This document shows positions 4,022-35,397 of a stretch of 64,000 bases of DNA, piece after piece (positions within the stretch are counted from its first letter, which is position 1; each line of letters opens with the position of its first letter). Origin of the DNA: Phallusia mammillata (taxonomy: Eukaryota); contig OZ281497.1 in the NCBI GenBank assembly GCA_965637545.1, positions 17,298,001 to 17,362,000 of the forward strand. Direction: 5' to 3'. The notes under the pieces were generated by a model. It worked only from the letters and a program-made list of their open reading frames with translations, did no database searches and was not told the DNA's origin. Made by a program: the position numbers and the translations under genes.

Positions 4022-7000
4022 TCAATCTAAAAAATAGAACGAGGAAAGCAACACAACTTGCCACCAACATTTCCAAAATCTTAAGCGTGTCGTATCCAAG
4101 GTTGTTGCACCTGACATAGTCATGGAAACAGTTGTTGTTGTTGTTGTCGTAGTCGTGGTCGTGGTCATTGCTCTCGGCGTCGTGGTTTGGGCTGCTTGCA
4201 AATACGTCCAGTTTGTCATGTCTGTATAAAAAAACATATGTCACTTCATAAGTGAAAGGGTACAAGTGTAATTTAATCATATAAGCAGGTATAGTTTTGT
4301 AGACAATCGTGTGTAAATTGAAATTTCGCCTACCGGTAACTTGAACAGATACAATAATGGAATCGTGTTTGATATACGACTTCATAGTACGCACGTTGTC
4401 CACCGCCTCAAAAGCCCTATAGCCCCATCCACTATTAAATTCCTGCAAAGATATCATTGGGAAAACAGGTTAGTTCTACTTAAAAAATAGCAACAAATTT
4501 CGACAAAACATGTTAATATGTTTACATATTACCGTGGTTGGTTGTCCCCAAGGTTTCGAGTTGGTGTCTGTGAGAAAGTTTGAAACAACGTTACTTTGCT
4601 GAAGAACGTCGGCAGTTTGATCAACGAGAGAAAGTTTGATGTATCTATTTTGAAACGGCCAATCAAGCTGATCATCATTTACTCCTTGAGCGATGTGAAA
4701 GTACACGGACATATAAGTTGAGTCAGATGACCTGCTGTCTCCTAACGGGTAAATCTAAGGATAAAGACCTCATGGTGTTTTTGTCGACATTTTTTTTCGT
4801 TCTTAGCGATGTTTTTTAAACACTCTTTTGGTAGGACTTATGTGTACATACAGATACAGATCACAAAAATTCGCCATGCTACTGTAAAACTGTAGTTTTA
4901 TCTCTAGTACCAAACCCTTGTCAAAGATAAAAACATCGTATTACCGTGAGAACAAAAGCATATCCGTCGTCTGTATACATCAAAGGACTTCTAAAACCGT
5001 CTCCTTTACTGGATGTATTTAGCTTCTCAGAAAAACCTTCAAGGGTGAAGAAACCAGTTTCACACGATCTGTCAATCACGTTGACGTCATCAATCGCAAC
5101 AACATCAGCTGAACCTAAAAGGTTGTATTTGCAAAACTCTAATCGTTGTGTTTTCGAAAGAACTAAAAAGTTTTTATATCAAAAAACAATTTACTGTACG
5201 CAGAAGTGACTTGGTTGAATATTATTGACTTTTTTAACTTTAAAGATAAACATAGGTATTTTGGTGTTTGGGTTAAACTCACAGGAAGAAATCTCCTTTT
5301 TCTGTAAACTAACAAACCTGCTGTAGCTGTAAAGAGGAGTTTAAACTCGGAAGGAGCTGACATCGTCACTCGAGCTTTCCTCCACATTTGTCCTTGGTCT
5401 CCATTTAATGTAAATATTTGACCAAGATTGCTTGAAGTAGTTGACTCCAGTGTTACACTGAAACAATATAAATTATTGTATCAACCTAAACTTTTTTGCC
5501 AAAACTTTCACATCAAAAGCATCCACACTTTAAAGTTATTGCTGTGCTTGTCGAGTGCATGTAGTATGAAAAATCAAGACATTGTTTGCTGACAGTGGAT
5601 TTCAGCAAAGGGGTACGAACATTCACCAAAGTGATAGAAGCACTTGACGACCTTGCAGCAACCAGGATGCTTCCTATTAACAGAAATAGATAGCGGCAAT
5701 TACAACTCCTACAACGCATAAAAACAACGGTGTTGGGCGTCACTGGCGACTCTTTGGTGTAACATTAAAACAATATATTCCTAAACCACGCAAAACAATA
5801 TTTTCTGATGACTCTCAATTGTGTTTACCGGTATCAGCCCGACCAAACGTTGCATCATTTTGCGGAAGAGTGGGTGAAGTTGTGGAGACTGAGTGACGTA
5901 TCCAACCTGTGCTGTTTTCCGCTACATACCCACATATCGAATTGTCTTCAAAATTGCAAAAGTACGAATACCGCTGTGTATCGCCTACGCCATACAAATG
6001 TTTACAGTACATTAGATTTAAAATCAATATGCTGTACAGTCCACCCCCACCAAAGTCGTACATCCGGCGAATTTTTGTCAGATCCCCAGAACTCATAGCT
6101 TGTCCTGTCCCGATGACATTTTGAAACGCGGGGTTAAGTGTCACTATCGATATGGATCCATTAATTCTAAAACATAACATGTTCACCATAAATGTATGTT
6201 AGTATTAATACAGTAGTAATACGATACAGTGTCTAGCAGCAACCCACGAGAACTCGTTTTGAGTGTAGTGCATGATTGAGTTGTAATCATATGGAACCCG
6301 CTGATGATCAACCAGGCTAACTTCTTCTCTATCGAAGTTATGGCGTTTGTCTAATGTAAAAAATGTGTGTTCACTTTAGATTTCTTCTGTTGCTTTTTTA
6401 CGATTTACCTTCTTCAACATTTTCCAACTGCACTATGACGTAATCGTCGCGGTCGGGTCTCGATTGTTCGTGGAAGAGACCGAGAGCGTGCAAAATTTCA
6501 TGTTGTACAGTGTCTATCAATTCACAACCGGCTCCGATTGAAAGAGATTGAGCACCACCTTGGCGTCCAACACGGGAAAAACACCTGAAATTGATAGGTT
6601 TGTTTTCAACATATTGGTTTAGTGGTATTTTCACAGTCTATACACGAACGTTTCGGAAATACTTATGTGAAATTCCAACAGTTTCATTTTTTGCCTCATA
6701 TTATGTTATAAGCACTCAGGGCCCCTACCTTAACTATTCACAAATATTATTACCATGTTCCTTAAAAGGAGCACCTAGCCACTTACCCTTTAAGTGGCGC
6801 TATGCTGATGTAGTCGGTTTCAACGGACTGGTTGACAAAATTGAAACCTGTTTTAAGCTCAAGATCTTCGATCGAATCCAAAATGGTCGCAATGGCCTGT
6901 GAAATCACCACAAAATGTTTTGATTTAAGCTAGTACTTGATATGTTTTATTCAGTTACCAGAAGCGAAAGCTGATCAGAGAAGTGGACCGGAATATTTTT

Positions 7001-8275
7001 GCTCCATCTAGTGTTCTCGTCAATAAGACCGTTTCTTGCAGTTTCCTTCAGAATATCATTGCCATGAAGAAAATTATCTAAAAACATGTTCCACGTTCTT
7101 TAAAATCTAAATTAATGACCATGTGAAGCGAACAGTTCAAAATGGATGTAAGCATCTCTTGATTTGGTGATCTCAATCAGTGCTCTTCAACCTTTTTTGG
7201 TTTGGTGAACCCTTAAAGTTGTTGTGACGAACTCATGCACCCTGTTTACTGAAAAGGTAAACAGGTAAAAAGCGAAATGAAAAATCGTTATGCATATCAT
7301 CTTGTCAATTAACTCCAAGCATATGTTGGCGAATTTTCCATGAAACATCGGCGAAAAAGCCAACACTCGATATCGTAACATCACCCGAATGCAACACAGA
7401 CACTATCAAACTATACACGGGGATAAAACATTAAAAAAGTTTACCTGGGTTATACATCATTTTAAACCTACATCTTATTCATAATATCCTGAAAGTCAAA
7501 TATTAATGGCTCATTAAAAGTTTGTAGTGCACCCTTGTATACCTTTTCGTTGGTGCCGTGCACACCGGTTGAAGAGCACTGATCTTAATGACAGTTAATA
7601 TTAGGCCAATTTACTCAGCAGTTTAACACGAAAAGCTTTTGTCAAGCCCAGTTATTTTACAAATGCCTGTTGTATATCAGTTTATCAATAGGCCGAATTA
7701 AAGCAGAGCAAGTTTTACAAGACGTCATTGCGCAATGATTATACTTAGTTTTGCAAGCCTCTGAATGGCAGTTCCGTACCTTTGTTAATTTCTGTAATTC
7801 GTCTTTTGTTACCAGCGTCGACATCAATGTTGTTGGATTTCGGGTTGTTTCCTACACCACAACTTAAGTATTAACACAATTTTTTTGCACAAAATATTCA
7901 ACTTTTGTGATTATTGTGGCATGCCACGTTGTAGCGTGGTATAACATATGAGCATTCACAACATTTTTAATTGATTTATTGGTAGGCTACAAGGTTTTTC
8001 GAACGGGAGGTTTTAATCAGCTCAGTTGTAGTTTTATGTCTAAGTCAAAAAACTATGTCGTAGGAATCTGTTTTCAAGGAATAAACTTTAATATCACCAT
8101 CCAAGTCCATTCCTCCAAGTCTTTTCGGTATAAAACTTGTCTGCAAGAAAAAAATAAATTCAATACAAATCTATTTCCCAAACGAGTAAAATTAAAAGTA
8201 AGTACATACTTGAAACTGAGGCAGTTGATAAATTAGAACAAAAATAAGAAGTCTGCCATACAGATACTTCTTCAT
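4022..8275 (-). CDS. Meprin-like astacin metalloprotease copy 1 (signal-pro-astacin-MAM-MATH-Thr stalk-GPI-like tail), 15 exons
   Basis: Spliced in frame: MKKYLYGRLLIFVLIYQLPQFQ; activation site R|NGLIDENTRW; HEILHALGLFH; Met-turn SIMHY; MAM CNFEDNSICG...AIDDV; MATH SPLMYTDDGYAF, GVNDDQLDWPF; GT-AG junctions throughout. Confidence 0.92.
7178..7581. mobile_element. hAT-like MITE in meprin copy 1 intron
   Basis: TIR CAGTGCTCTTCAACC; 8-bp TSD ATCTCAAT/ATCTTAAT; single ATCTCAAT at the empty paralogous site in copy 4 (~28182). Confidence 0.9.
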
Positions 8276-9161: not shown

Positions 9162-9427
9162 AGTCTATGGTCGGTGACCTTCCTCCAGAGCTGGGGGTCT
9201 TTACATGGGAGTGGATGCAATGGAATTGTGATGTCACAAACGGGTTATCGGAGGGTTTGAGCGCATGGCAAACATCCGACGACACGAATCACGTGATACG
9301 ACCAATCTATATGACGTCACGGCGATGGATGCTAAAAATTTCTTTAAACGACGAAAGAAACTCGTTGGCTAAACACTGGGGATCTCACTATCCTACTGTT
9401 TGTCGCCCTTGTCTGAGTTTGTCAGCG
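9162..9427 (+). pseudogene. 5'- and 3'-truncated duplicate of the 32-639 exon
   Basis: Matches 233-507, has an internal 12-nt deletion and no splice acceptor, then jumps to sequence matching ~816. Confidence 0.8.
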
Positions 9428-11322: not shown

Positions 11323-14300
11323 CTACGCATCATACTTTTTATCCGATATAAAGTAGACCAAGGGAAGCAACACAACCGTCCACCAACATTTCCAAGATCT
11401 TAGGGGAGTCAAATTCAAGGTTGTTGCAGCTGACGTAGTCGTGGCAACAGTTGTTGTTGTTGTGGTTGTTGTCGTCATTGCTGCTGTCGTCGTCGTTGTT
11501 TGGGCTGCTTGCAAATAGGTCCAGTTTGTCATGTCTGTACAAAAAAAACATAGTTAACTCCATTAGTGAACGGGTATACGTGTGATTTATTCATATAAGC
11601 AGGTATATTTTTGTAGAAAATGGTGTGGAGATTGAACGTTTTGCCTACCGGTAACTTGAACAGATACAATAATGGAATCGTGTTTGATGTACGACTTCAT
11701 AGTACGCACGTTGTCTACCACCTCGAAATTCCGATTGCCCCATCCACCATTAAATTCCTGTAAAGATTTTATAGGGAAAACAAGTTAGTTCTACATAGAA
11801 AAAGCAATAAGTCATATAACTTGTTTTTATATTACCGTGGTTGGTTGTCCCCAAGGTTCCGAGTTAGTGTCTGTGAGAAAGTTTGAAACAACGTTACTTT
11901 GCTGCAGGGCGTCGGCAGTTTGATCAACGAGAGAAAGTTTGATGTATCGGTTTTGAAACGGCCACTCAAGCTGATCATCATTTACTCCTCGAGCGATGTG
12001 AAAGAACACTGACATATAAGTTGAGTCAGATGACAGGCTGTCTCCTAACGGGTAAATCTGAGGATAAAAACCCCAAAGATGCTTTTGGCCTATAATTTGT
12101 CGTTTTTAGCTATGTCTTACTAGTTGGTTCGTTGAAAAATCTTTTTAGTTGGACGGTTGTGCATTTGTAGGTCACAAGCATTTACCGTGCAAAATTAGTT
12201 TTAGCATTAGGGCACAAACCGTTCTCGAAGTCAAGAACATCGTATTACCGTGAGAACAAAAGCATATCCGTCGTCTGTATACATCAAAGGACTTCTGAAA
12301 CCGTCTCCTCTGCTGGATGTATCTAGCTTATCAGAAAAACCTTCAAGGGTGAAGAAACCAGTTTCACACGATCTGTCAATCACGTTGACGTCATCGATCG
12401 CAACAACATCAGATGTCCCTAAAAGGTTGTATTTGCAAAATTTGAATCGTTGGCTGTGTTTTTGAAAGAACTAAAAAGTTTTCATATCCAATACCAATTT
12501 ACCGTACGGAGAAGTGACTTGGTTGAATATCGTTTTAACTTTTTTAAACTCTACATATGAACATAGATATTTTGTCTATGGGTTAAACTCACAGGAGGAA
12601 ATCACCTTTTTTTCAAACTAACCTACCTGCTGTGGCTGTAAATTGGAGATGAAACTCTGATGGAGCTGACATCGTCACTCGAGCTTTCCTCCACATTTCT
12701 CCTTGGGCTCCATTTAATGTAAATATTTCACCGAGATTGCTTGAAGTAGTTGACTCCAGTGTTACACTGAAACGATGCAAACTATGTTAACAAACTGACC
12801 TTTTTTCCAAACCTTTTACATCAAAAGCATCCACACCTTAAAGTTATTGCTGCGCTTGTAGAGTGCATGTAGTATGAAAACTCCAGACACTGTTTGCTGA
12901 CAGTGGATTCCAGCAAAGGGGTTCGAACATTCACCGAAATGGGAGAAACATTTGACGACCTTGCAGCAACCAGGACGCTTCCTGTAAATTTTGCAACCAA
13001 GATTTAGAAATAAATGGCCGTATTTACAACTCAGATAACGTTTAAAACAACTGTGTTTTATGTTACTGGCGACTGTTTGGTTTAAGTTTGAAACGATAGA
13101 TCACCTGAACATCCAAAAGAAAACCCCCAAATGACTCTGAATTATGCTTACCAGTATCAGCTTGACCAAAACTTGCATCAGTTTGTGGAAGAGTAGGTGA
13201 CGTTGTGGCGACTGAGTGGCGTATCCAACCTGTGTTTTCTGCTACATACCCACATATCGAGTTGTCTTCAAAGTCGCAAAAGTACGAATACCGCTGTGTA
13301 TCGCCTAAACCATATAATGTTTTACAGTAGATTGGATTTGACATCAATACGTTGTACAGTACATCCTCACCAAAGTCGTACATCCGTTGAAGTTTTTTCA
13401 GATCCCGGAACTCATAGCTTGTCCTTTCCCGATTACACTTTGAAACGCGGGGTTAAGGGTCACTATCGATGGTGAACCATTAGTTCTAAAACATAATAAG
13501 TTCACCATAATTGTATGTTAGTGGTAATACAGTTAACTATCCAGCATCAACTTACGAGAATGCGTTTTGGGTGTAGTGCATGATTGAGTAGTAATCATAA
13601 GGAACCCGCTGATGATCAACATGGCTTACTTCGTATCTGATAAAGTTGTGCTGATTGTCTAATTCAAAAAAATGTGTGTTCACGTTAGATGACATATATT
13701 GTTTTGTTACGATTTACCTTCTGCAACATTTTCTAACTGCACTGTGACGTAATCGTCGCGGTCGGATCTGGATTGTTCGTGGAAGAGACCTAGAGCGTGC
13801 AAAATTTCATGTTGTACTATGTCTATCAACTCACAACCGCTTCCGATTGAAAGAGATTGAACACCACCTTGGCGTCCAACAAAGGAAAAACACCTGAAAA
13901 TGATAGCTTTGTGCTTAACATATTTGTTTAGTGGTATTTTCACAGTGTTACAGAAACGTTTAGGAAATATTCATGTGACATTTAATCAGTTTCATTTTTC
14001 TGTCATCTTATGGTTGAACAGCAATTAGGGCCACGTGCACAACCATTTACAACTATTTTTGACCAAATTATTACTATTGTCCATTAAGACGTGCACCTAG
14101 CCACCTACCCATCAAGTGGCGCTATAGTAATGTAGTCGGTTTCAACGGTCTGGTTGACAAAACTGAAACATGTTTTAAGCTCAAGATCTTCGATCGATTC
14201 CAAAATGGTCGCAATGGCCTGTGAAATCACCAAAAAATGTTTCAATCTCAAGATTAGAAAAGTACTTGGTATGTTTCATATGGTTACCAGAAGCGAAAGC

Positions 14301-15119
14301 TGATCAGTGAAGTGAACCGGAATAGTTTTGCTCCATCTAGCGTTCTCGTCAATAAGACCGTTTCTCGCAGTTTCCTCCAGAATATCATTGCCATGAAGAA
14401 AATTATCTAAAAAACGTTCCACACTTTTTAAAATCCTAATTAATAACCATGTGAAGCAACCAGTTCAAAATCGGCGTAAGCGTCTCTTGATATGGTGATC
14501 TAAATTAGAGTTAATATTAGGCCAATTGAATTAGCTGTTTAACAATTAAAGCTTTTGTTAGTTGATAGAGTAAATTTTTCAAATTGCGCAATGACTTTAG
14601 TTTCACAAGCCTTTGAATGGCAGTTTCGCACCTTTGTTAACTTCTGTGATTCGTCTTTTGTTACCAGCGTCGACATCAACGCGGTTGGATTTTGGCTTGT
14701 TTCCTACAGCACAACTTAAGTATTTACAAAAGATTTGGCACAAATGCTAAACTTTTTGTGATTATTGTGGTATGCCATGCTACAAAATGAGTATTCAAAA
14801 CATTTTTAATTGATTTAATGGTAGGGTCCAAGTTTTTTCCTTACGGGAGGTTTTGAGAACTCTAGTTATGGTTTATGTATAAGACATAATACTATATCGT
14901 AGGAATCTGTTTTCAAGGGATAAACTTTAATATCACCGGCCAAGTCCACTCCTCCATTATCTTCTATTCTCGGTATCAAACTTGTCTGCGGGCAAAAATA
15001 ACTTCAATACAAATCTATTTCCCAAACGAGTGAACTTAAAAGCAAGTACATACTTGAAACTGAGGCAGTTGATAAATTAGAACAAAAATAAGAAGTCTGC
15101 CATACAGATATTTCTTCAT
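11323..15119 (-). pseudogene. Meprin-like copy 2 with a single 1-nt frameshift in the last astacin exon
   Basis: All 15 exons present with intact HEILHALGLFH and SIMHY. TCC GGG ATC TGA at 13398-13409 has three G where copy 4 has four (TCC GGG GAT CTG), giving a stop before MAM. Confidence 0.75.
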
Positions 15120-15965: not shown

Positions 15966-16348
15966 AGTCTACGGTCGGTGACCTTTCTTCAGAGCCGGGG
16001 GTCTTTACCTCGGAGTGGGCGTATTGGAATTGTGACGTCACAAACGGGTTGTCGGAGGCTTTTAGCGCTTGGCAAACATCCGACGACACAAATCACGTGA
16101 AACGACCAATTTGCATGACGTCACGGCGATGGACGAACTTCGCTTTGAAAGTTCCTTTAAACGACGAAAGAAACTCGTTGGCCAAACACTGGGATCATAC
16201 TGTTTGTTGCCCTTGTCTGAGTTTGTCAGCGTCTTGTGCCGCGAGGTTGCGCTTAGTGAGGCTGCTTGGCGCTCCCGGACGCCGATACAGGCGATTGAAA
16301 ATGCGCTGGTTACAGCCTCAAACCCTTGACACCGGGCAAGGGTTTTAG
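15966..16348 (+). pseudogene. 5'-truncated duplicate of the 32-639 exon
   Basis: Matches 233-625 with a 9-nt in-frame deletion; ends GF-stop; no acceptor upstream; 3' flank matches 640-788. Confidence 0.8.
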
Positions 16349-19071
16349 GCTGGTTCGATCATGAAGGGTTTGTTGTTACTGGTAACTCGACCATACCAAC
16401 CCTGTTTTCGTGAAAACTGCCAAACCCTTGAAACATTTTTTTGAAGCTGTGGCCTAATTAACTTTCCACAATTGCATTTTTTTAACCTTTGTAGTTTAAA
16501 GAACTTTTGTCGAACTTGAGGTGTTTTTAGGTGAGGTTTTCATAAAAGCATGAACTTCTCATTCTATAGCTTACTACATAACTTGTTTCTAATTTGTTGT
16601 AATTTACAACCGTAACAGGAAGCAAACAAAAGCTCAACCCAGAAAACTAACAATACTTGTAGCACCAACTGCTAAGTCAGTTAATGTTATACCTAACTAA
16701 GTATCTCCATAATTTGATACACCATTATATTAGGCATTTTAGTTGTAAAGCCAAAAACAAGCGCTTAGTTCACATTCTTTCTATTTTATTTTTGATGTGA
16801 TATTTTACAATTTTTGAACTCCCGACCAGTTTCTAAACTTTGTGAAACAGTTCATATTTGGACGACAAGTTATAAGGGCAAAACATTTTAATGCTAACGT
16901 TTCTTCAGTGACAAAGATTAGTGGGAGCAAAATGGATGAACAATAATCATACATGTAGGGCCTACCTACATTGTAGGCTATTATAACTTAGTGTAGAGTG
17001 AACTAATATATCGTATGTTAATCGTAAGTACAACAGTCTGTTTATATATATATATATTATGTATTTATATGTACAGTCCAATAGTTTTGTGTTTATGCGT
17101 ATGTCCATAAAATCAGCAGAACAATTGCCGAAAGACAGTGCCAATAATTTAATTGAACTGATTTGCCTGCACGCGAATTGGTCCAGTTTGTCATGTCTGA
17201 AGATAAAACAGTAATATAAGCTATATGTTAATATAAGCTACGCATTTCGTATCGCGCAAGCGGAAAGTTTAGTACTGATTTTTGCACCTACATGTTACTT
17301 ATACAGAAATAACAACTGAGTTGTGCTTGAGGTACGACTTCATGTTGCGCACATCATTCAACTTTACAAGTGTTTGATAACCACTTCCAATATTTAACAC
17401 ATTATGGACACTTGCCTGTAACTTGCACAGAAATAATGACTGCATTGTGCTTGACGTATGACCTGAGGTGACGCACGTCATCCAACTTCACGAATGTGCG
17501 ATAGCCCAAACCAGTATTTACACTCTACAAACGTAGAACATAGGTCTACATGTTTTGTTTATTCGAAATATTTACATTTACTGTATCTGGTCTTTTCCAA
17601 TATTCCGCCGAGTCTGTGAGAAAGTTTGCAATAACGTTACTTTGCTGCAGGACGTCGGCATTTTGATCAACGAGAGAAAGTTTGATGTATCGATTTTGAA
17701 ACGGCCACTCAAGCTGGTCATCATTTACTCCTCGAGCGATGTAAAAGTACACTGACATACAGATTGATTCAGACGACAGGCTCTTTCCTAGCGGGTAAAC
17801 CTGGAAAATTAACATACACCTTAGTTTGACGGACGATTCTTGCAGATGAATTGTTTTTGTACGTAAAGAGTCAAAAAAGGAACACTAGTGATTACCGACA
17901 CCCTAAAAGCGTATCCGTCGTCTGTGTACATTACAGGACTCAGGGTTGCATCTCCTCTGTGGAACACATTGAGAATTTTCAGAAAAACCGAGTGTAAAGA
18001 AACCAGTTTCACACGACCTGTCAATCACGTTGACGTCGTCGATCGCAACCGCGTCTAAAGATCCTTGAAATAATGCGTCACAGAACTTGTTATTTTGCGA
18101 TTTGTCATTAAAGTTTTGAAACATGTAACGATTTATTGCAACCAATGCTGAACCCTTAGATAGTCATCAGCACTTACGACGTTGGCGGAGAGTGTGTGGG
18201 CGATAAACCTAAAACTATACTATTCTTTTGTTTCAATGTTTACAGCATTAATGGAATACCGACGCAACGTCAACCGGAAAACTTAGACCTCTCTAAGCAT
18301 TTATACTGAAACTCGGCTATGAATGGCTAATGGTTATCCTAGCTAATGGTTATTTACCTGACGAGGAATGGGATGAAATGATTTTGCTATCAGATTGACA
18401 TTTTAATTAAGATTGAAGTTAACTATAAAGTTTTTTTTGTGTGTATTTTTCAAAGAAAAATTTAGTATGTACTTGTGACAAACCAACCTGCTGTAGCTGC
18501 AAATTGGAGATAAAACTCAGATGGAGCTGACATCGTCACTCGAGCTTTCCTCCACATTCGTCCTTGGTCTCCATCAATTTCGAATATTTTGTTACCCATC
18601 ATATTTGATGATGGTGACACTGACACCAGTGTAACACTAAAATAAATTTTGTTGTAGAGTTTTTTAATAGCATTTAACGTGAAGTGAATTGAAATTACTT
18701 TGCTGAAATATTGTAGATAGGAAATGTTTACCAGATAAACAAAATCAGTTTTACCTTAAACTTATTGATGTACTTGTCGAGTGCAAGAAGTAGGAGAACT
18801 CAAGACACTGTTTGCTGACAGTGGACTTCAGTAGAGGGGTTCGCACAAACATGGATGAGGGCGAATAAGTTGGCGAGATGGCAACCAAAATGTTTCCTAT
18901 AAAGTTAAAATGTTTTAAATTATGTCAATTGTTGTCGCCCGGTCATTACTTTTTCTGTCAGTTATGAAAACGTTTCAACATTTAAAAGATATTGCGGGGA
19001 GTAAAGAACCTTGGCGAAGGGTATTTGGCTCTATAAATTCACTACTGTGATCAGATCTGAAGCGTCTATGC

Positions 19072-22371: not shown

Positions 22372-23324
22372 CAGGGGCGGGCAACTTCTCCAGTCGGCGG
22401 GCCTGATATGGGAAAATGAAGTACTTGGCGGGCCGGATTCCTGAATCGATACATTAATCGCGTATTTATCCAGTGATTTAAAACGGATTTTTGACCACCT
22501 AAACCAGGGGTGGGGGACCTTTTTGTTTATAAAAGCTACCTAACGATTTATCGACACTCGTGTAGGCCTACGCCGCATAGACTATTTCCCAGGCCAAGGG
22601 CAGTGATGTTCAAACTTTTTGACTTACAGAATGGTCGTTTTGCTATTTCCTCGTAGTTTGTAGGACTTACGGTCCCAGCTAATTAAAATTCCTCACTACA
22701 TTTTCATCTTCACTACAACATTCAGGATTTATTTAACCTAGAAATTGCTGAACCTGGAGTTTTTGGTAGTCCTAACTATGGAAATCGCTTTATGTACCAC
22801 TATGGGACCACATGGGTCTTGTTTGAAAACCGCTGCCCTGGAACTAATCAAAAAATAATCTGCAATAAAGTCAAAAATACGTTTCTGTCTATTTTTTTCA
22901 GCGCCTGGTGCAGTCGGTTATATCAACATCTTAAAAATGTATTTTGCCATCGAAGGCCGCACTTAGTGCCCTGAAAGGCCGCATGTGGCCTTTAGGCCGC
23001 AGGTTCCCCACCCCTGGGCCTGAACTAGGCTATACGTGTGGAAACAAAGAAAACCGTTGAAGTAGGACACACACAAGGTTGGTAGTTATGTCGTAACAAT
23101 GGACGTATGGTGCAATGGTAACAACGGCGGGAAATGTTTTTGCTATTGGGGAGCGTTACTGTGCGTTACAACTGTAATTTGACGTAGTAAGCAAGTAATG
23201 GGGGATTGCGGCAGACTGTGGCCGCGGGCCACATTATCATGTAAGACCGGAAACTGTCCGCGGGCCGCTCAAAATCCCGTTGCGGGCCGGATCCGGCCCG
23301 CGGGCCGTATGTTGCCCACCCCTG
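22372..23324. mobile_element. hAT-like MITE (GCGGGCC subterminal repeats) with nested MITE at ~22505-23017
   Basis: CAGGGG..CCCCTG termini, perfect TSD GATTAAAG; related to 46580-47096. Confidence 0.85.
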
Positions 23325-24755
23325 GATTAAAGGATATATGTAGAAAAATAGGCCCTAGTACCCACAAAATCACTTAACTTCGCAATATCTAAACATATTT
23401 TCTCATACCCTTGTTAATTTCCGTAATTTGTCTTACGTCGTTGGAGTCGACATTATCAACAGAAACTGAACTTGATGTTTGGTTGTTTCCTGCATCAATT
23501 ATATCCATACAAACTAGGTTCAATAGAACAAATTAGTAACAAAACAGCATTGATTAATTTCTATTAATGTCACCTGTCTCAAGTATTAATACACTTGACT
23601 GTTTTAAAGTTTAGCGCTAGACTTGTAAGAAATTTGTATTGATCGTTGTTTCAGCTAAAAGCTAAGCGACAAACAATGTATATAGCTCTCAAACTATTTT
23701 CTTACATTACCTTGTCTTTTTAGTACCCAACTTGCTGCCTGTAAGTAAAATATGTTTTTTTATAAAATCACAAAAACTAAACAAACATTTTTATACCAGA
23801 CATAGCGTAAACTGATATCAACATGAACATGAAAAGTTGAAATATATGTTTTTTCATTTCAAACTTCATCTACTTTTCTGTACATTTAAATGTCTTTAGC
23901 AGTTTTGCAAATTTAAATAGAAGCCTATGTGACACAGCAACAACATTTGTACAAAAACCTGCTACTAAAAATTGTGATCGCAAACATTTTATGTTCATGT
24001 TTGCTTAGTTTGTAAAGTCGGGTTCATTCGGTATTAACTACTTTTTATAGAACTTAACTACCGTCGTGGGAGGTTAGCAGGTCTCGTCCAAACAATTAGA
24101 TTCGGTAAAGACCATGGTGGAATTTTCATGAGACATTTTTTTCCATATCAGGGCTTATTTTTTATTACTGCGCCTTTGTCTGCACATGTTCGAGTAACTA
24201 GTAAATGTAGGGAATGTCAACCAAAACAAAGTCTACATAAAAAGCTAAAATTTAACGACTTTCGTTCCAGTGATACTGGGGCAACATCAGACATATCCTA
24301 CCGTTATTTTGGAGAACGTTTAACAACTGGTGATTAATTTGTGTTGTTTAAGTTGATGACGTTACTCTTTCTCTCATGTTTTGATTTCTTGAAAATATTT
24401 ACATGTTACCTATAATTATCCAGACGCATCCACAACATTTGGCGGAAGTAAACAATCGTTACGTTTGAGAACAAGAACAGATTGCTGGTTTAACGTTTTC
24501 AAACGTTAAGACCGGATTTCTTTTTGGGAAAAGGTACATATTTTCTTCTGGGATACTAATAAACAGCAGGGTCGAAACACATGTAGGACTCATAGCCCAA
24601 CCTGCACAAAGCGATTGCTTACCATATCGACGAACTGATTACTAATGCTGCATAGTTTATTTGCTTTGTACCAGTAATGCTACGCTTCAGTTTTTTGTCT
24701 GATACAACTTTATGGGCACTTTACAGGATATATATACACAAAAGTCATTATCAAA

Positions 24756-27700
24756 TCACTCGATAAAGTAGACCAAGGGAAGGAACATAACTGTCCACCA
24801 ACATTTCCACAATCTTAAGCCTGTCGTATCCTTGGTTGTTGCACCTGACGTAGTCGTGGAAACAGTTGTTGTTGTCGTCGTGGTAGCTCTCGGCGTCGTT
24901 GTTTGGGCTGCTTGCAAATAGGACCAGTTTGTCATGTCTGTATAAAAAGCATAGTTCATTTTATAAGTTAACATGTATAGGTGTGATTTAATCATAGGAA
25001 GCAGGTACATTTTTGTAGAAAATCGTGTGGAGATTGAAGTTTCGCCTACCTGTGACTTGAATAGAAATAATAATGGAATCGTGTTTGATGTATGACTTCA
25101 TAGTGCGCACGTTGTCCACCGTCACGAAAGACCTATAGCCCCATCCACGATTAAATTCCTGTAAAGATATGATTTGAAAAACAAATTAGCTCTGCATAGA
25201 AATAGAAACAAGTTTCGACAAAACATAATGACATGTTTTCATGTTACCGTGGTTGGTTGTCCCCAAGGTTCCGAGTTGGTGTCTGTGAGAAAGTTTGCAA
25301 TAACGTTACTTTGCTGCAGGACGTCGGCAGTTTGATCAACGAGAGAAAGTTTAATGTATCGATTTTGAAACGGCCACTCAAGCTGGTCATCATTTACTCC
25401 TCGAGCGATGTGGAAGAACACGGACATATAAGTTGAGTCAGATGAAAGGCTGTCTCCAAACGGGTAAATCTAAGAAGAAAAACCTCTTTTACCGATGTCT
25501 TATAAAAATATCGTTGGTTGGACGGTTGTGCATTTATAGGTCACAAACATTCACCTAGTTAGTGCAAAATTAGTTTTAGCAATAAGGCCCAAACTCTTGT
25601 CGAAGTCCAGAACATCGTACAATACCGTGAGAACAAAAGCATATCCGTCGTTTGTATACATCAAAGGACTCTGAAAAACGTCTCCTCTGCTGGATGTATC
25701 TAGCTTATCAGAAAAACCTTCAAGGGTGAAGAAACCAGTTTCACACGATCTGTCAATCACGTTGACGTCATCGATCGCAACAACGTCAGCTGATCCTAAA
25801 GGGTTGTATTTGCAAAGTTTGCATCTTTAGCTGTGATTTCTACAGTTTTCATATCCACGGTTTTCAATAATTTATGTACTTAAAGATGAGTATAGGTATT
25901 TTGGTGTCTGGTTTAAACTCACAAGAATACAAATTTGTCTGTAAGCTATCAAACCTGCTGTAGCTGTAAAGAGGAGTTTAAACTCGGAAGGAGCTGACAT
26001 CGTCACTCGAGCTTTCCTCCACATTTGTCCTTGGTCTCCATTTAATGTAAATATTTCACCAAGATTGCTTGAAGTAGTTGATTCCAGTGTTACACTGAAA
26101 CAGTATAATTTTTTTATCAACCTAAACTTTAAAATACACACAAAATAGTGTTAAATGCGTTAATAGTTCCAAACAATCACATGGAAGCATTCCCACCTTA
26201 AAGCTATTTCTGTGTTTGTAGAGTGCATGTAGTAGGAGAACTCTAAACATTGTGTGCTGACAGTGGATTGTAGCAGAGGGGTTCGAACTTTTAAAAAAGT
26301 TGGAGAAGGATTTGACGAAGTTGCAACCAGGACGTTTCCTGTGAATTTTGTCACCAAAATTTAGTAAAAGAAACTTTATTTACAACATAGCCACGGCCCA
26401 TAGTGGTACTGTATTGACAAACACATGAAACGTTTTTCTCGGCATCTAGCATCCTACAGGGTTTGAATTTGGCCCAGCTACAGTCCTCTGATGGGTTTCA
26501 ACCAAGATTCTCAACCTGTAGTGAAATTCTAAACTTATTTGGATTAAGAATTGCAACAAATTACTATCCACTCCCAACTGGCTGCCCTGGTATTCGGCGG
26601 GAACTCGTGTCTTGGACATTCTTTTGGGATAACATCATTGCTGACAAGGAGTCAAGAAGAATTTACCCACTCTCTTGGTACAACCATATAATTCAGATTC
26701 AGGTGGTACGCAGCGATAGGAAAAGTCATCAGGTGGTACGCGATCAGTAGAAGGTTGGGAATCACTTGTTTAAAATTTAAACAATGGACCACAAAACATT
26801 ATCTGCAGAATATCTACAAATGACTGAAAATGCACTTACCTGTATCAATTTGACCAAATGTTGCATCAGTTTGCAAAAGATCGGGTAACGACACGGAGAC
26901 TGAATGACGTATCCAACCTGTGTTTTCTGCTACGTATCCACATATCGAATTGTCTTCAAAGTCACAAAAGTACGAATATCTCTGTATATCGCCTACACCA
27001 CATAAATGCATAACAGTAGATTGGATTTGACATCAATAAGCTGTACAGTCGACCCTCACCAAAGTCGTACATCCGTTGAATTTTTGTCAGATCCCCGGAA
27101 CTCATAGCTTGTCCTGTACCGATTACACTTTGAAATGCGGGGTTAAGGGTCACTATCGCCGGTGAACCATTAGCTCTAAAACATAACATGTTCGCCATAA
27201 ATGTATTTTAGTGGTAATACAGTAATAATACATACAGTGTCCAGCATCAACTTACGAGAATGCGTTTTGAGTGTAATGCATGATTGAGTAGTAATCATAC
27301 GGAACACGCTGATGATCAACAAAGCTAACTTCGTATCTGAGGAAGTTATGATGATTGTCTAATGAAAAAAAAAGTTTGTTCATTTTAGATGACTTCCATT
27401 GTTTTTTACGATTTACCTTCTCCAACATTTTCTAACTGCACTGTGACGTAATCGTCGCGGTCGGGTCTCGATTGTTCGTGGAAGAGACCTAGAGCATGCA
27501 AAATTTCATGTTGTACTATGTCTATCAATTCACACCCGCTTCCGATTGAAAGTGTTTGAGCACCACCTCGACGTCCAACAAATGAAAAACACCTGAAATG
27601 GTACCTATGCTTTGTGCTTAACATATTTGTTTAGTGGTATTTTCAAAGTGTGTACAGAAACGTTTTCGGAAATATCCATGTGTGACATTCAATCGGTTTC

Positions 27701-28842
27701 GTTTTCGTGTCATCTTATGTTTTCAAGCAATTGCACAACTATTTACAAATATTTTTAACAAAATTATTAATATTGTCTGTTAAACCTTGCACCTACCCTT
27801 CAAGTGGCGCTATGCTGATGTAGTCTGTTTCAACGGACTGGTTGACAAATTTGAAACATGTTTTAAGTTCAAGATCTTCGATTCCTTCCATAATGGTCGC
27901 AATGGCCTGTGAAATCACCACAAAATGTTTCGATCTCAAGCTTAGAAAAGTACTCGGTAGTTTGTGTTAGGTTACCAGAAGCGAAAGCTGATCAGAGAAG
28001 TGAACCGGAATATTTTTGCTCCATCTAGTGTTCTCGTCAATAAGACCGTTTCTTGCAGTTTCCTCCAGAATATCATTGCCATGAAGGAAGTTATCTAAAA
28101 ATGTTTCACACTCTTAATCTTAATTAATGACCATGTGAAGCAAACAATTCAAAATGGATGTAAGCATCACTTGATTTGTTGATCTCAATGAGTTAATAAT
28201 AGACCGATTTACTGAGCTGCTTAACAATTAAAGCTTTGGTCAAGCCCAGAGATTTTACAATTGGTTATTGTATATCAGTCGATCAATAGGCTGAACTAAA
28301 TGACAGCAAACTTTTTAATTTGCGCAATGACTTTTACTTCGTTTCACAAGCCTCTGAATGGCAGTTCCGTACCTTTGTTAACTTCTGTGATTCGTCTTTT
28401 GTTACCAGCGTCGACATCAATGGTGTTTGATTTCGGGTTGTTTCCTACAGCAAGTATTGACACAACTTACAGAAGATTATACTTTTTTGACTATTGTGGC
28501 ATACCATGCTACAATATGAGTATTCACCACATTTTTAATTGATTATTGGTAGGCTGCATTTTATTTTTCCTACTGGAGGTTTTAAGCAGTTGAATTAAGG
28601 TTTTATGTGTAAGTCAAAATACTATATCTTATGAATCTTTTGTCAAGGGATAAAATCATATGTCACCTTCCAAGTCCACTCCTCCATCATCTTGTCTTTT
28701 TGGTATGAAGCTTGTCTAAAAGAAAAATAAATTTAATACAAATCTAACGAGTAGCAACTTAAAAGCAATGACATACTTGAAACTGAGGAAGTTGATAAAT
28801 TAGGACAAAGATAAGAAGTCTGCCATACAGATATTTCTTCAT
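24756..28842 (-). CDS. Meprin-like copy 4, intact, 15 exons
   Basis: In-frame splice of all exons; HEILHALGLFH, SIMHY, MAM, MATH, Thr-rich final exon ending WWTVMFLPLVYFIE*. Confidence 0.92.
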
Positions 28843-30715: not shown

Positions 30716-33700
30716 CTAAATGTACAACATGCACACAATCATATGCAACAAAACGGATCCTGGCCATTTTGGTAAGAGTCCAGCAGAACCACACTGCCTG
30801 TCATCATCTGCCACAGACGTCTTTTTCGGTAATTCTTTCCATTTGTTCATGTCTGCCACAGAAATTATAAATGCGATATTATTTCTATTTGCAACAACTA
30901 GTAAAACGAGACAACCTTATGTTCAGTAAAACCATCATTACACGGTCAGCGTGCAGTTGATGTATATAATAATCAATAACTAAATAAGCTGATTTCTTTT
31001 GTAGACTTGTAGCTTTTTCGTTTTTTTATCGTTGCTGAAGAGTTGCTTTTGAAATAACCTATACTCACTTCTAATTGCTACTTATAATTCCTACTGTATT
31101 GAATGCTACTCACCTTTAACCTGTATGGAAAACAGCAAAGTATCATGTTTTATGTACGAGTTCTTGTTGAGGACATCTGCAACTGGCATAAAGTAGCTGT
31201 AACCCCAACCAACACCAATCTCCTGTGGACAAAAAAACCTTTATTCCACCAAGCATTTTTTTCAGCACAGCTGCTACAGACTTTATTTAATCTTTTGAAA
31301 AAGGGTTTTCTAAAGAACTTGTCGATTTCCACGTGTGGCGTTTTTTTTTACAAAGGTTAATTAGCTGGACCGATAGCCATGACATCGTAACTAATTAAAC
31401 CAATGAAGAGAAAAAAAGCTCTTACTGAAGTTGGTCTTTCCCAAACTGGGTTATCAGCAGTAGTGTTGAGATTACGAAATGAGTTCATCCGATGCAAACT
31501 ATTGGACGATTGGTCGACTACCGAAAATTTTATGAAACGATTTGCAAACGGCCACTGCAGTCGATCATCATTCACTCCTTGAGCCAAGTGAAAGAACACG
31601 GACATATATCCAGGATACTCGCTGCTTCGTCCGACAGGATACACCTGTATGAAATATGAATATCACTTTGTTAAATAACTTCTCTTCTGCGATTCACACC
31701 TGCAAGTTCCGGTAAGCAAACTCGGTAAGTGACCATATTTTCACATAACTTACTAATAACAGTACGAACCAATTTAGCATAGCCAGGCTCTATATTTACC
31801 GATATTCTGAAAGCATATCCATCATCGGTGTAAAGCAACGGGCTTATATAACCCTCAGCGATTTCAGTTGTGCTTAAAATTTGGGAATAGTTTCGAAAGT
31901 GCACGTGCGCGGTTTCGCAAGGCCGGTCGATCACGTTGACGTCATCGATTGCAATGACGTCATTAGACTCTGCAGAGTTATGTACGATTATGATTAAAAC
32001 GTTTTGCTTTTATAAAATTCGGATGTATGCAGTAGTACTGTGGTACATCAAAGTTTAGAATTTCTCCTGTTAGTTATACGCTAATTACCGTTTACATTTA
32101 AAAGGTCGTTGATGCAATTGAGTTACCCAATGTTACAGTGAAGCGTAGTTTGTATTCTGTAGATGAGGTTATCGTTAATAACGCTGTGGTCCACATTTGT
32201 ACTTGATTGTTATCTACAACTAACAACTCCGTAATGCTGACGCTGCCATCAGAATTTTGCGTCTCCTTAGCAACACTTAAAAAAAGAATTGTTTACGCAG
32301 CTATAAAACAACCTCTTTAAAAGCAGTCTAGTTTTCAATGACTTTTTGACAGGCATTAATGCTACACGTATTTGTTTACCTCAATGAAATCGCGTTTGAA
32401 CTAACATAGTATGAGAATTCTAAACACTGTGCATCAGCTGTAGGTTCCAGTAACGGTGAAAACATTCTCTTTGTTGTTCGGTAGAAGCCACCAGTTTGCT
32501 GGGCGATCATCATATGTCCTGTGACAAGTTCAATTTTGCACTGTGTGCATATTGTTTCGCACCAATGCAAATGTATTAAGATCTGCTGGTGGTCGATTGA
32601 AACAAGTAACTGATAAGCAAAAAGCGTATGACATTGGCATTTCAACCTTTGTCTGCTACATCATAAGTAGCGTCGGTTTTCGGTAGTATCGATGAAGAGA
32701 CTGTGGCAGATTGATGTTTCCAACCGCTTTCGGGTACGTAACCGCATATTGAAGGATCCTCGAAGTCGCAAAAGTACGAAACCCGCGCAGTGTCGCCTTC
32801 GAAACACAAGCAAAATATAAGTGATGCCTGCACGTGCTCAGACTGCAGAATTTGTATAGTATTTTTGTATGACAGTTGTAATTTCGTACATGTCTAAGCT
32901 TGTTTCAAATTTTACTTCGCGGTATGGCACAAGCGTAACGAAAGCGTGCGTTATAGCCAGGGTTGCCATCGACTTGAATCCAAAAATAAGGACAACCGAA
33001 AAATTAAATTTTAAAACGAAACGAAGCCAACGTTTTTTTAACAAATCTTTGCATTTATACGTCCCCTGACATATAATATGCAATATTTTGGCCAGAAACA
33101 ATCTGTTTCAGCAACTCCTTGCTCGTAGTAAACACCTTGCGCATCTCACGACCGCTAATGTCTCGTTTTACGTTTACTAGTAGCATGGTTTTGACTTGTA
33201 ATTGTTGAAAATAAGACAAAAGAAGGACTCAAGTCCAAAATAAGGACATTTCTTAGAAATAAGGACATTGAACTTTTCTAAGACACTACCGTTCAAAATA
33301 AGGACAAATCTTAGAAATAAGGACGGTATGGCAACCCTGGTTATAGCTAACGATAGTGCAAGCCGATGTATAAATTTTACAATGCTTTGACGTCAGTAAT
33401 TCGGATAAAACAAACTACAAGAGATTTCATGTCATGACGCAATCCAGTCTTAACATCACGTACACCCACAGTCACACTATTCTAGATCTTACCACAATCG
33501 TACATTCTTCTCACTTTTGCAAGGTCACCTTCACTCAAAGCTCGTGTGGTTCCAATAACATCTTGAAAAACTGGATTTTTTGTCACGATCGTTGGTGATC
33601 CATTCGTACTAGTTAGTGTGATAAAAAGTATTTGTAAATGATTTTACCGATTGGCTATGTTCAAATGCAATAATTTTGGAACAAAATGATTTTCTGTAAC

Positions 33701-35397
33701 CAAGTAGTTATAGGACTGTTAAGTTCTGAAGGAACACTGAAAGCTTGAAAAAACTGTGGTTTGTGACAACATTTTCCCCTGTACATAAACTATGAAGTGA
33801 ACTTTAACAAACAATGCTATTAGACCAGCTTTTCAACATAAATATGCGGTAACATGTAGTGTACATCCAATCCTATATTTACGCTTACCTAAATGCTGTG
33901 GATGTATAGTGCATTAGCGAATAGTAATCATATGGGATTCGCTTTGGATGTATCAAAGTCTTGTCGTAGCTGTCAAAGTTATGTTCTCTTCCTGAAATGT
34001 AAACAAAAGTTCACGCATGTACATATGTTGGGAAAGACATTTTACACAGCAAATATACCTTTAAACGTTATAAACCACCAGTAGATTGCAAAATTTACAG
34101 TCATCGCCACATTTCACATTTTACCTTCCAAAATATTTTCAAATTGAATACTGACGTAGTCGTCGCGGTCCGATCTCGATTGTTCGTGAAATAAACCGAG
34201 AGCGTGTAAAATTTCATGTTCAACTGTGTCCATTAATTCACACCCGCTGCCGATCGACAAAACTTGCACACCACTTTGCCGACCGACGTAAGAAAAACAT
34301 CTGTTAAATTTAATCTACAGTTGAATTTAAAACCGAAAAAGGAGTAGATATGAAAGTACATGAAGAAAAGAAAAAAAATATATTGTCAAGTTTTTTTGTG
34401 TTATGAAGTCGCTTTTGATTTTCAACTCATTTTTTTTCAAAAACAAAACACCAGTATTTTGATTTGAAAATATATAATATATCATGTTTGTAAAATAAAC
34501 TGGATAATATACCCCACAAGGCGTTGAAATTCAATGAAATCTTTCTGGTCCGTTCGGTTAACGAAAGAAAGACATGTTTTTAATTCCAAATCTTCAAATG
34601 CTTCTAAAATAGCCGCAATCGCCTGCAAGTACAAACACCAAGCCATATTGTTTGAATTCCGAAATTCCGGTTTAAAGGCGTTACCACAGGGTATAAGTGT
34701 TGAGCGAATTGAACAGGGACTACTCTACCCCATCGAGTAGTTTCGTTAATAAGGCCGTTCTTCGGCGATCCTTTTCCGGGAACAATGTCATCACCACCCA
34801 GGAAATTTCCTTTTAAGCAATAAAATCCATTGTGCACAATGCCCGAACCAACGTGTTTAATTGAGACGAAAGCATACCTTTGTTTACTGCTGTGATATCT
34901 CTCTTGCTAATGTCGTCGACCCCGATTACTCTGGCCCCTTCATCTGAAGACGTAAGTAAATTTGCACTGCGTTAAGATCAAACCGCGTACTATACTGCCT
35001 AACTTATGTAAACAGTTTTAACATGAAATAACTTGTTACCTGACGATGCTTGCAGTCTTGTACTGAAGCTGTTGATTTTTATTATTTCTCCCTGTAAAGA
35101 TTGTATCTTGGGTCTTAAAGTTAAAATATAAACTGACAAAAATTAGAGGTTATTGTTTGAGACGTTAATAGAGTCAATTTTGTGTTCTGTTTATCTTATT
35201 GTCATGAAATTCCACCTTCACGAACCAGTAAGCTGACATTTTCTCTGAATTAATTAATGCACAGCTAGATTTGCACTGTTTCCGATGTAGTAGGACGTAC
35301 TGTTAAATAAGATACAAAATGTTCTTACCAGCGATACAGCATACTGCAGGCCAACCGCTAAAAGCAAAAGCAGAACCAAACTCGGAATAACTTTCAT
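30716..35397 (-). CDS. Meprin-like copy 5 (most divergent), intact, 15 exons
   Basis: Signal MKVIPSLVLLLLLAVGLQYAVSL; K|NGLINETTRW; KTCLSF; HEILHALGLFH; SLMHY; RMYDC; MAM; MATH; final exon DMNKW...RQCGSAGLLPKWPGSVLLHMIVCMLYI*. Confidence 0.9.
32958..33339. mobile_element. hAT-like MITE with AAATAAGGAC subterminal repeats
   Basis: TIR CAGGGTTGCCAT; perfect TSD GTTATAGC. Confidence 0.9.

Follow-up and report, generated by a model that had tools for sequence, protein, structure and literature searches.

To our knowledge, the literature singles out meprins as the only proteases combining MAM and MATH domains with a transmembrane (TM) region, and the biology of the vertebrate enzymes is governed by the mode in which they are held on the membrane or shed from it. 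A related diversity of anchors occurs in the matrixins, another metzincin family, where MT4-MMP/MMP17 and MT6-MMP/MMP25 are GPI-anchored whereas MT1-, MT2-, MT3- and MT5-MMP are TM-anchored, as shown experimentally; in this comparison, TM- and GPI-anchored paralogs within one protease family would represent the same type of switch as the one proposed below. MDGA1/2 are likewise GPI-attached proteins with a MAM-domain ectodomain, but they contain no protease or MATH domain and are otherwise unrelated. Vertebrate meprin alpha and beta (MEP1A, MEP1B; PDB 7uab, 4gwm) resemble the genes described here in domain order, signal peptide and propeptide. However, they also have an EGF-like domain as well as a TM helix and cytosolic tail, and meprin alpha has an inserted furin-cleaved domain (PMC4545420), none of which is present in the copies described here.

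The closest described systems are the tunicate meprins, which have been reported with a transmembrane region and include three tandem, EGF-less genes on Ciona intestinalis chromosome 8 (Marin 2015, PMC4545420). A preliminary description of the present locus had mentioned tandem meprin genes in Ciona, correctly; as these are published and also lack EGF, the tandem arrangement and the absence of EGF are already known. Among the matches listed by title in full-text literature, there was no natural GPI-anchored astacin or meprin, and GPI is nowhere mentioned in the astacin review PMC9848320.

Five tandem meprin-like genes

The window, a 64,000-nucleotide stretch of Phallusia mammillata DNA, harbors a head-to-tail array of five paralogous meprin-like protease genes, all on the minus strand, which extends over 4022-35397, with the final base of the copy 1 stop codon at one end and the copy 5 ATG at the other (Table 1). 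Gene models were built on canonical splice sites and conserved intron phases, with the junctions in copy 1 set by homology to the RNA-verified copy 4, and gave 15 exons per gene in all five copies. RNA revealed two small additional 5' exons in copy 4, and their counterparts in the other copies were placed by similarity. Every copy encodes a signal peptide, a propeptide, an astacin domain, MAM and MATH. Copy 5 is the most divergent, with 47-49% identity to the other copies.

Table 1. Features of the meprin-like cluster, numbered from the first letter of the window.
Feature	Position	Strand	Remarks
Copy 1 gene, ATG to stop	4022..8275	-	15 exons, 648 aa, ORF intact, all splice sites GT-AG
Copy 1 exons 1-8	8275-8210, 8140-8098, 7851-7780, 7077-6959, 6896-6787, 6584-6409, 6350-6248, 6166-6051	-	
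Copy 1 exons 9-15	5984-5829, 5673-5529, 5457-5318, 5114-4945, 4754-4533, 4442-4334, 4221-4022	-	
Copy 2 gene	11323..15119	-	15 exons, reading frame broken, C-terminus extended
Copy 3 gene	17093..23857	-	15 exons, frame shifted
Copy 4 gene	24756..28842	-	15 exons, 642 aa, ORF intact, transcript evidence
Copy 5 gene	30716..35397	-	15 exons, 629 aa, ORF intact; second exon 35091-35040 uncertain
Copy 4 signal-peptide exon (MKKYLYGRLLIFVLIYQLPQFQ)	28777..28842	-	outside RNA contig coverage
Signal-peptide exon counterparts	copy 1 8275-8210; copy 2 15119-15054; copy 3 23857-23797; copy 5 35397-35329	-	
Copy 1 putative GPI signal	4025..4114	-	S-G-A, spacer TTLDTTRLR, FWKCWWQVVLLSSFYFLD, stop; last exon 4221-4022
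Copy 2 signal-like segment	11326..11433	-	S-A-A, spacer TTLNLTPLRS, WKCWWTVVLLPLVYFIS, then DKKYDA
Copy 3 putative GPI signal	17096..17176	-	S-R-A, spacer GKSVQLNY, WHCLSAIVLLILWTYA; stalk absent
Copy 4 putative GPI signal	24759..24848	-	S-G-A, spacer TTKDTTGLR, LWKCWWTVMFLPLVYFIE; transcribed
Copy 5 putative GPI signal	30719..30790	-	G-S-A (or C-G-S, S-A-G), spacer GLLPKWPG, SVLLHMIVCMLYI
Copy 4 RNA joints	24937/25050, 25158/25248, 25469/25626, 25795/25955, 26094/26197	-	X1-X3
Copy 4 RNA joints, continued	26338/26840, 26992/27060, 27358/27417, 28094/28373, 28444/28667	-	X1-X3
AATAAA	copy 4 24656..24661; counterparts copy 1 3928-3933, copy 2 11299-11304	-	conserved block common to copies 1, 2 and 4

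Domain assignments were examined by Pfam tests run exon by exon on copy 4. Three consecutive exons matched PF01400 (Astacin; E = 2.5e-24 for the core exon), and the three exons directly following the protease matched PF00629 (MAM), together covering profile positions 1-136 of 158; with the domain split over exons, no single MAM exon reached the gathering score. The two exons after MAM matched TRAF/meprin MATH families (PF21355, E = 4.5e-13, above the cut-off; also PF22486). Human meprin alpha and beta were the best PDB structures for both the astacin and the MATH exon, with TRAFs ranking next for the latter. All five copies retain the zinc-site motif HEILHALGLFHEQSR(P/S)DRD, which agrees with the HExxHxxGxxHExxRxDRD definition, as well as a Met-turn exon with S(I/V/L)MHY. 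Conserved first exons are predicted, by eye and hydrophobicity and in a region outside RNA coverage, to encode ER signal peptides (MKKYLYGRLLIFVLIYQLPQFQ, MKKHIFQLFMFMLISVYAMS, MKVIPSLVLLLLLAVGLQYAVS); in copy 4, the phase-0 donor of this exon is the only one compatible with the RNA-defined second exon.

C-terminal segments of the last exon

In every copy, the last MATH exon is joined to the final exon in phase 1 (codon G/AC = D), so that the latter begins with DMTNW, or with DMNKW in the case of copy 5. The C-terminal peptides quoted in the preliminary description were located on the minus strand in all five copies, and its account of their ends was borne out, with a short hydrophobic stretch at or near the stop and no EGF, full-length TM helix or cytosolic tail. 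No EGF-type cysteine pattern turned up when all six frames of the window were scanned over its full length, and the last exons gave no Pfam match.

A GPI signal is described as an omega residue (G/A/S/N/D) followed by a non-Pro residue at omega+1 and a small residue at omega+2; a hydrophilic spacer 8-12 residues long comes next, and 15-20 hydrophobic residues form the C-terminus (PMC10491789). All five tails can be placed on this pattern, with small omega and omega+2 residues on either side of a non-Pro omega+1, a spacer of 7-10 residues and a terminal hydrophobic stretch; the omega sites are our own placement, and the looseness of the small-omega pattern makes it weak support taken alone. The terminal stretches comprise 13-18 residues, compared to the published 15-20, and are broken up by K, Q, H or P. 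Their hydrophobic cores span 11-17 residues with 0-6 residues after them. Copy 5 (13 residues) and copy 1 (uninterrupted core of only 11) fall below the published length. The stretch ends 0-1 residue from the C-terminus in four of the five copies and is followed by six hydrophilic residues in copy 2. Upstream of the putative signal, the last exon of copy 1 encodes a Thr-rich stalk, and in copy 3 the proposed omega site follows MATH with hardly any flexible linker. GPI anchoring is the best reading of the five tails and a reasonably probable one. PI-PLC-sensitive GPI proteins such as HrUrabin exist in ascidians (PMC9265791).

Other tunicate meprins and the origin of the tail-less form

The homologous DM last exon is also found in six other tunicate meprins, from Ciona intestinalis, C. 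savignyi, Styela clava and the contigs L001 and L002. The Ciona and Styela proteins share the astacin-MAM-MATH order without EGF, and the window copies are 38-39% identical to those of Ciona and 34-36% to those of Styela. These proteins also share with the window copies a single last exon that begins at the conserved V-x-D-M junction following MATH and encodes the segment for membrane anchoring. In the six relatives this exon encodes a 25-32-residue helix and an 11-37-residue cytosolic tail starting with basic residues. The stalk of Ciona and Styela is acidic and rich in His, their helix measures 25-29 residues and their cytosolic tail 17-37, whereas in the window copies the stalk is Thr-rich or absent, the core has 11-17 residues and there is no tail.

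Homology between the DM exon and the TM exon in these relatives also permits a different view, in which the five proteins are type I membrane proteins whose short retained TM helix spans or half-spans the membrane without a cytosolic tail; we regard this as unlikely. InterProScan-type tools would label such a stretch TM, as they do for Ciona meprins. In copies 2-5 the uncharged stretches attain lengths of 14-17 residues, which short helices of the early secretory pathway can match, and tunicate meprins were assigned a transmembrane region by Marin 2015 (PMC4545420). Against a retained helix, the cores are 8-20 residues shorter than those of the six relatives, the basic stop-transfer residues present in all of them are missing, and the stop follows the core almost immediately in all copies but copy 2. 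Additionally, all five copies have a small-residue site and spacer at the distance expected for GPI, and GPI transamidase usually acts on proteins that combine a signal peptide with a tail-less, marginally hydrophobic terminal stretch, according to Galian et al. 2012 as reported in PMC10491789.

The window copies group together as a single clade of five (UFBoot 99), outnumbering the three Ciona genes, and the tail-less form is therefore derived in this lineage. The preliminary description had called the architecture ancient, a claim that does not hold given the helix and tail encoded by the homologous exon of the relatives.

Under the GPI reading, we propose that the tunicate membrane anchor became a signal for GPI attachment at the C-terminus in the common ancestor of this lineage-specific five-gene tandem cluster. 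The original anchor would have been a single last exon encoding a stalk, a TM helix of ~24 residues and a basic cytosolic tail. The N-terminal signal peptide would bring the zymogen into the ER, where the C-terminal stretch, being short and of marginal hydrophobicity with an 11-17-residue core and no tail, would hold it transiently at the membrane. GPI transamidase would then cut at a small residue 24-30 residues from the end (S in SGA, SAA and SRA; G, S or C in CGSAG) and attach GPI. In copies 1, 2 and 4, a Thr-rich and probably O-glycosylated stalk may keep the enzyme at a distance from the membrane, and activation would involve a propeptide (FLHGNDI aspartate-switch region) that is probably removed after Arg in ...TAR/NGLID. 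GPI attachment itself, the omega sites, cell-surface location, activation and any phospholipase release are what we infer from sequence features.

We somewhat favor the view that the meprin/astacin family here gains its first naturally GPI-anchored members, arising from one switch from TM and tail to GPI before the fivefold expansion, and that they would have an outer-leaflet tether, which phospholipase could release, without a cytoplasmic signalling or sorting tail. If so, the cluster would provide a natural comparison for the roles of the helix and tail in sorting, dimer retention and shedding, and astacins would join those metzincin families in which anchoring changes between TM and GPI. 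This interest is tempered by three points: evolution has commonly replaced TM with GPI anchors, EGF-less meprins in tandem are already published for tunicates, and the anchoring is deduced from the sequence.

Lesions in copies 2 and 3 and transcript evidence

Two of the five copies may be non-functional. A 1-nt deletion in a G run (GGGG to GGG) near 13404 shifts the frame of copy 2 in exon 13485-13371, and in copy 3 the A run near 17978 is one base longer (+1 insertion), which shifts the frame in exon 18063-17896. These frameshifts may mark pseudogenes or, as both lie in homopolymers, assembly errors. The six-residue tail within the C-terminal SDKKYDA extension of copy 2 originated from a deletion that took out the stop codon. 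In copy 3, the donor before the last exon (after exon 17524-17416) is GC, and exon 17524-17416 has a degenerate duplicate at about 17302-17400. Copies 1, 2 and 4 have lost one or both members of a conserved cysteine pair in the astacin domain.

Such lesions, the dead duplicate exon among them, and the low RNA depth would fit a decaying cluster or soluble enzymes, with a non-working anchor, products that are clipped and secreted, retained and degraded, or never made, and a hydrophobic end persisting as a remnant. This appears improbable considering the three intact ORFs of 629-648 aa with complete zinc sites, and the coding sequences are under purifying selection (dN/dS among copies 0.10-0.44, comparisons with copies 2 and 3 included). 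Moreover, copies 5 and 1 are 48% identical overall and their tails are not alignable, yet the physico-chemical layout of the tail and the position of the stop are kept.

Transcript evidence comes from copy 4 alone, at low RNA depth. Ten junctions of this copy were confirmed in spliced RNA contigs from three runs (X1-X3), and none of these joints was present in the DNA run X5. The joint 25050/24937 connects the last MATH exon to the last exon in all three RNA runs and reads through the stop at 24756-24758 without differences; the X1 contig showed 0 differences from the genome over 24750-24937, stop codon included. Splicing to further downstream exons, the outcome that the preliminary description had named as contrary to its proposal, was looked for in copy 4 RNA and was not seen, and the three RNA runs contained no contigs in 23900-24699, downstream of the stop. 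Since the contigs end 6-17 nt past the stop codon, they do not map the 3' end. Even with low-depth contigs from one copy that cannot reveal transcript ends, it is very improbable that the gene models are an artefact, with real transcripts ending in other downstream exons (EGF, TM, tail) and the DM exon a minor alternative end, given the MATH-to-DM-exon joint in all three runs, a neighboring gene that begins 900 bp off, spacers between genes without EGF pattern or Pfam match and a homologous exon that is last and carries the stop codon in every other tunicate examined. Finally, the conserved AATAAA lies 88-94 nt past the stop in copies 1 and 4 (94 nt in copy 4) and 18 nt past it in copy 2.

Gene models and domain composition of the five copies

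All five C-terminal peptides quoted in the preliminary description were located on the minus strand of the window, where the astacin zinc-site exon (HEILHALGLFHEQSR) and the Met-turn exon (S[IVL]MHY) also occur five times each, interspersed among them. When minus-strand ORF fragments were compared all against all, the conserved coding blocks fell into five colinear sets (copies 1-5); copies 1, 2 and 4 also share similarity in non-coding DNA, and copies 3 and 5 are alike in coding frame only. Copy 1 was modelled from splice-site and frame constraints and the other copies by exon-wise alignment to it, nearly all transferred borders falling on AG or GT with the expected phase. Earlier 13-exon models, which left the signal-peptide exon through a weak phase-1 donor, were replaced after RNA joints revealed two small 5' exons of copy 4; these removed a conflict of phase between the signal-peptide and propeptide exons. 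The final models comprise 15 exons in each gene. Intact ORFs were obtained for copies 1 (648 aa), 4 (642 aa) and 5 (629 aa). One nucleotide is deleted from a G run of copy 2 and one is inserted into an A run of copy 3 (+1); because both frameshifts sit in homopolymers, assembly error and pseudogenisation are equally likely. The last intron of copy 3 is GC-AG, its GC donor following the functional penultimate (MATH) exon, and it harbors a dead, degenerate tandem duplicate of that exon with an in-frame stop. A start considered for copy 1 (MICITIF...) was rejected; it lies inside a ~400-bp insertion, missing from copies 2 and 4, in a 5' intron; the insertion carries an ATG followed by a hydrophobic ORF resembling a signal-peptide exon. 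The flanks of this insertion overlap by ~14 bp at the empty paralogous sites, which suggests a target-site duplication.

Domain tests were run on copy 4, one exon at a time. Three consecutive exons matched Astacin (PF01400; core exon E = 2.5e-24) and the next three MAM (PF00629; profile positions 1-136). The exon across the MAM-MATH junction gave no Pfam match, and the two exons after it matched families of the TRAF/meprin MATH type (E = 4.5e-13). Among solved structures, the best matches to the astacin exon, and likewise to the MATH exon, were human meprin alpha and beta. Every copy opens with a conserved signal-peptide exon, followed by a propeptide whose FLHGNDI segment resembles the aspartate switch of astacins. 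No Pfam match was obtained with the last exons of copies 1, 3, 4 and 5, and an EGF-type cysteine pattern was found in no frame of the whole 64-kb window. In copies 1, 2 and 4, the cysteine that closes the astacin domain is replaced (MYDC to MYDF); its likely partner is lost in copy 1 (LKTC to LKTG) and kept unpaired in copies 2 and 4. Copies 3 and 5 retain both cysteines of the pair.

Coordinates of features in the window
Feature	Position	Strand
Meprin-like genes, copies 1-5	4022-35397	-
Copy 1, stop and 3' UTR region compared with copy 2	3950-4024	-
Copy 2, site of ~60-nt deletion	11323-11345	-
Astacin-end cysteine replaced, copies 1, 2, 4	6051-6060; 13371-13380; 27060-27070	-
Exons of likely partner cysteine, copies 1, 2, 4	~6840; ~14160; ~27850	-
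Copy 1, rejected start	7300	-
Copy 1, insertion in 5' intron	7182-7579	
Empty paralogous site of insertion	28180-28193	
Copy 2, frameshift	near 13404	-
Copy 3, frameshift	near 17978	-
Copy 3, dead exon duplicate in last intron	17302-17400	
Copy 4, RNA contig through last exon and stop codon	24750-24937	-
Copy 4, joint of last MATH exon and last exon	25050|24937	-
Copy 4, small 5' exons	28715-28667; 28444-28373	-
Copy 4, RNA contig extension	28716-28744	
Copy 4, alternative DNA contigs	24940-25281; 25669-25678; 26627-26729	
Spacer ORFs	16-636; 9164-9427; 15968-16345	+
Further ORF	36477-37058	-
Repeat block downstream of copies 1, 2, 3	198-2600; 9163-10786; 15967-16457	
Dispersed repeat pair	2142-2612; 52342-52928	
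Tandem paralog pair	57896-59668; 61641-63175	-

C-terminal tails and transcripts of copy 4

The last exon is entered in phase 1 in all five copies and begins D-M-(T/N)-(N/K)-W, followed by a Thr-rich stretch in copies 1, 2 and 4 and by none in copies 3 and 5. The published GPI signal consists of a small omega residue, a non-Pro omega+1, a small omega+2, a hydrophilic spacer of 8-12 residues and 15-20 hydrophobic residues (PMC10491789). Each of the five tails can be placed on this pattern; their hydrophobic stretches are rather short for it and contain interrupting K, Q, H or P residues. In copy 2, the additional DKKYDA corresponds to 3' UTR sequence of copy 1 and is present because a deletion of ~60 nt took the stop codon and part of the 3' UTR, so that former UTR is now read and adds SDKKYDA.

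C-terminal tails placed on the GPI signal pattern
Copy	Small-residue triplet	Spacer	Terminal stretch
1	S-G-A	TTLDTTRLR	FWKCWWQVVLLSSFYFLD
2	S-A-A	TTLNLTPLRS	WKCWWTVVLLPLVYFIS + DKKYDA
3	S-R-A	GKSVQLNY	WHCLSAIVLLILWTYA
4	S-G-A	TTKDTTGLR	LWKCWWTVMFLPLVYFIE
5	G-S-A	GLLPKWPG	SVLLHMIVCMLYI

Between 11 and 25% of sampled words from the copy 4 region were present in three RNA runs of one study, which is the expectation for exons only. RNA contigs over 23900-29899 contained ten GT-AG joints in base-exact agreement with the modelled exon borders, including that from the last MATH exon to the last exon; none of the ten occurs in the DNA run. One RNA contig leads from the MATH exons through the entire last exon and its stop codon with 0 differences. 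Further downstream exons, which the preliminary description had named as contrary evidence, are absent from the RNA contigs, the last exon being read through the stop, and no RNA contig lies within 23900-24699. This transcript evidence comes from low-depth contigs rather than reads, concerns copy 4 only and reaches neither the signal-peptide exon nor the poly(A) site. An AATAAA is conserved 88-94 nt past the stop in copies 1 and 4. In one RNA contig, the second exon of copy 4 runs on past its acceptor for 29 nt on the upstream side in place of a join to the signal-peptide exon; this could represent unspliced pre-mRNA or an alternative 5' end. Within copy 4, the DNA run also gave alternative contigs of about half the depth; these skip 340 bp, differ by small indels and replace one stretch, suggesting either a second haplotype or misplaced contigs from paralogs.

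Tunicate comparators and mode of anchoring

An exhaustive protein search with the MATH exon gave no match above 51% identity and none from P. mammillata itself; it yielded Ciona and Styela meprins, plus exon fragments leading to four loci (L001-L004). A word-based search with the same query gave no match, as expected with an exon-sized query, and carries little weight. Comparators, counted as six, were collected through the MATH-exon search, cluster look-up and contig retrieval, from C. intestinalis (P0128, P0034), C. savignyi (P0018), Styela clava (P0124, P0126, P0059) and the tunicate contigs L001 (ENA) and L002 (JGI). The window copies are 38-39% identical to the Ciona meprins, and their peptide strings are absent from the supplementary alignments of Marin 2015 (C. 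intestinalis), so the window belongs to another species. In all comparators, MATH ends V-x-D-M and the remainder lies in a single last exon. That exon encodes a stalk that is acidic and His-rich, an uncharged hydrophobic segment 25-32 residues long, and then 11-37 further residues as a tail starting with K, R, H or S. Measured in the same way, the hydrophobic stretch of the window copies is 11-17 residues long and 0-6 residues come after it. By this comparison the last exon is homologous to the transmembrane exon of the comparators, with the helix shortened and the tail lost in all five copies. A Tara transcript fragment (P0050) with a terminal hydrophobic stretch of 23 residues and no tail is possibly an incomplete ORF and was not counted as evidence. 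In L002, a reverse-transcriptase-bearing element (PF00078; 4300-4930 of that contig) occupies part of the last intron of its meprin-like gene.

In C. intestinalis, chromosome 8 carries three meprin genes in tandem, reported to encode protease, MAM, MATH and "a transmembrane region" without EGF in a paper that nowhere mentions GPI (Marin 2015, PMC4545420). The tandem Ciona genes mentioned in the preliminary description are thus real, and its observation on the five copies, including the lack of EGF, holds with corrections; because it is published for Ciona, the tandem EGF-less architecture is already known and not new.

Judged from sequence, the window C-termini bear the hallmarks of a putative GPI-attachment signal, namely marginal hydrophobicity, no stop-transfer residues, no tail, a small-residue site with spacer, and a signal peptide, and this layout is kept although the tail sequences no longer align. 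The GPI-anchored meprin subfamily proposed in the preliminary description is supported in part: a GPI-type signal is the best reading of the tails, and an "ancient" origin is not supported. GPI anchoring of these proteins is somewhat probable; release by phospholipase instead of sheddases is speculation. GPI anchoring works in ascidians, where PI-PLC releases HrUrabin (PMC9265791). Among the titles listed by full-text literature searches, none was on an astacin or meprin that is GPI-anchored in nature, and GPI goes unmentioned in a recent review of astacins. A short transmembrane anchor without a tail, which would suit the homology of the exon to the transmembrane exon and less so its short stretch without stop-transfer residues, is unlikely. 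A decaying or soluble product, compatible with the frameshifts of copies 2 and 3 and hard to match with the intact frames of the other three, is more doubtful still. A gene-model artefact is very improbable beside the exact RNA joints of copy 4.

History of the cluster and neighboring sequence

A tree inferred by maximum likelihood (LG+G4, 587 columns), with a vertebrate-like meprin fragment as root, unites the five window copies in one clade (UFBoot 99) apart from Ciona and Styela, with the branching order (c5,(c3,(c1,(c2,c4)))), c1-c5 being copies 1-5. Values of dS to copy 5 exceed 3 and are saturated, and dN/dS is 0.10-0.44 throughout. The simplest history has the anchor converted once in this lineage, ahead of the first duplication and the later expansion. 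With the window copies in one clade and the comparators keeping helix and tail, the proposed ancient origin is not supported; the tail-less feature is old relative to the cluster and not an ancient trait of the meprin subfamily.

The three spacer ORFs and the further minus-strand ORF listed in the table gave no Pfam match. A repeat block with plus-strand ORFs of 88-207 aa, themselves without Pfam match, is shared downstream of copies 1, 2 and 3, and its similarity is at the DNA level, because it is alike in all frames. A second, dispersed repeat pair is 70-90% alike, also in all frames, and ORF fragments of a tandem minus-strand paralog pair are 41-59% identical.
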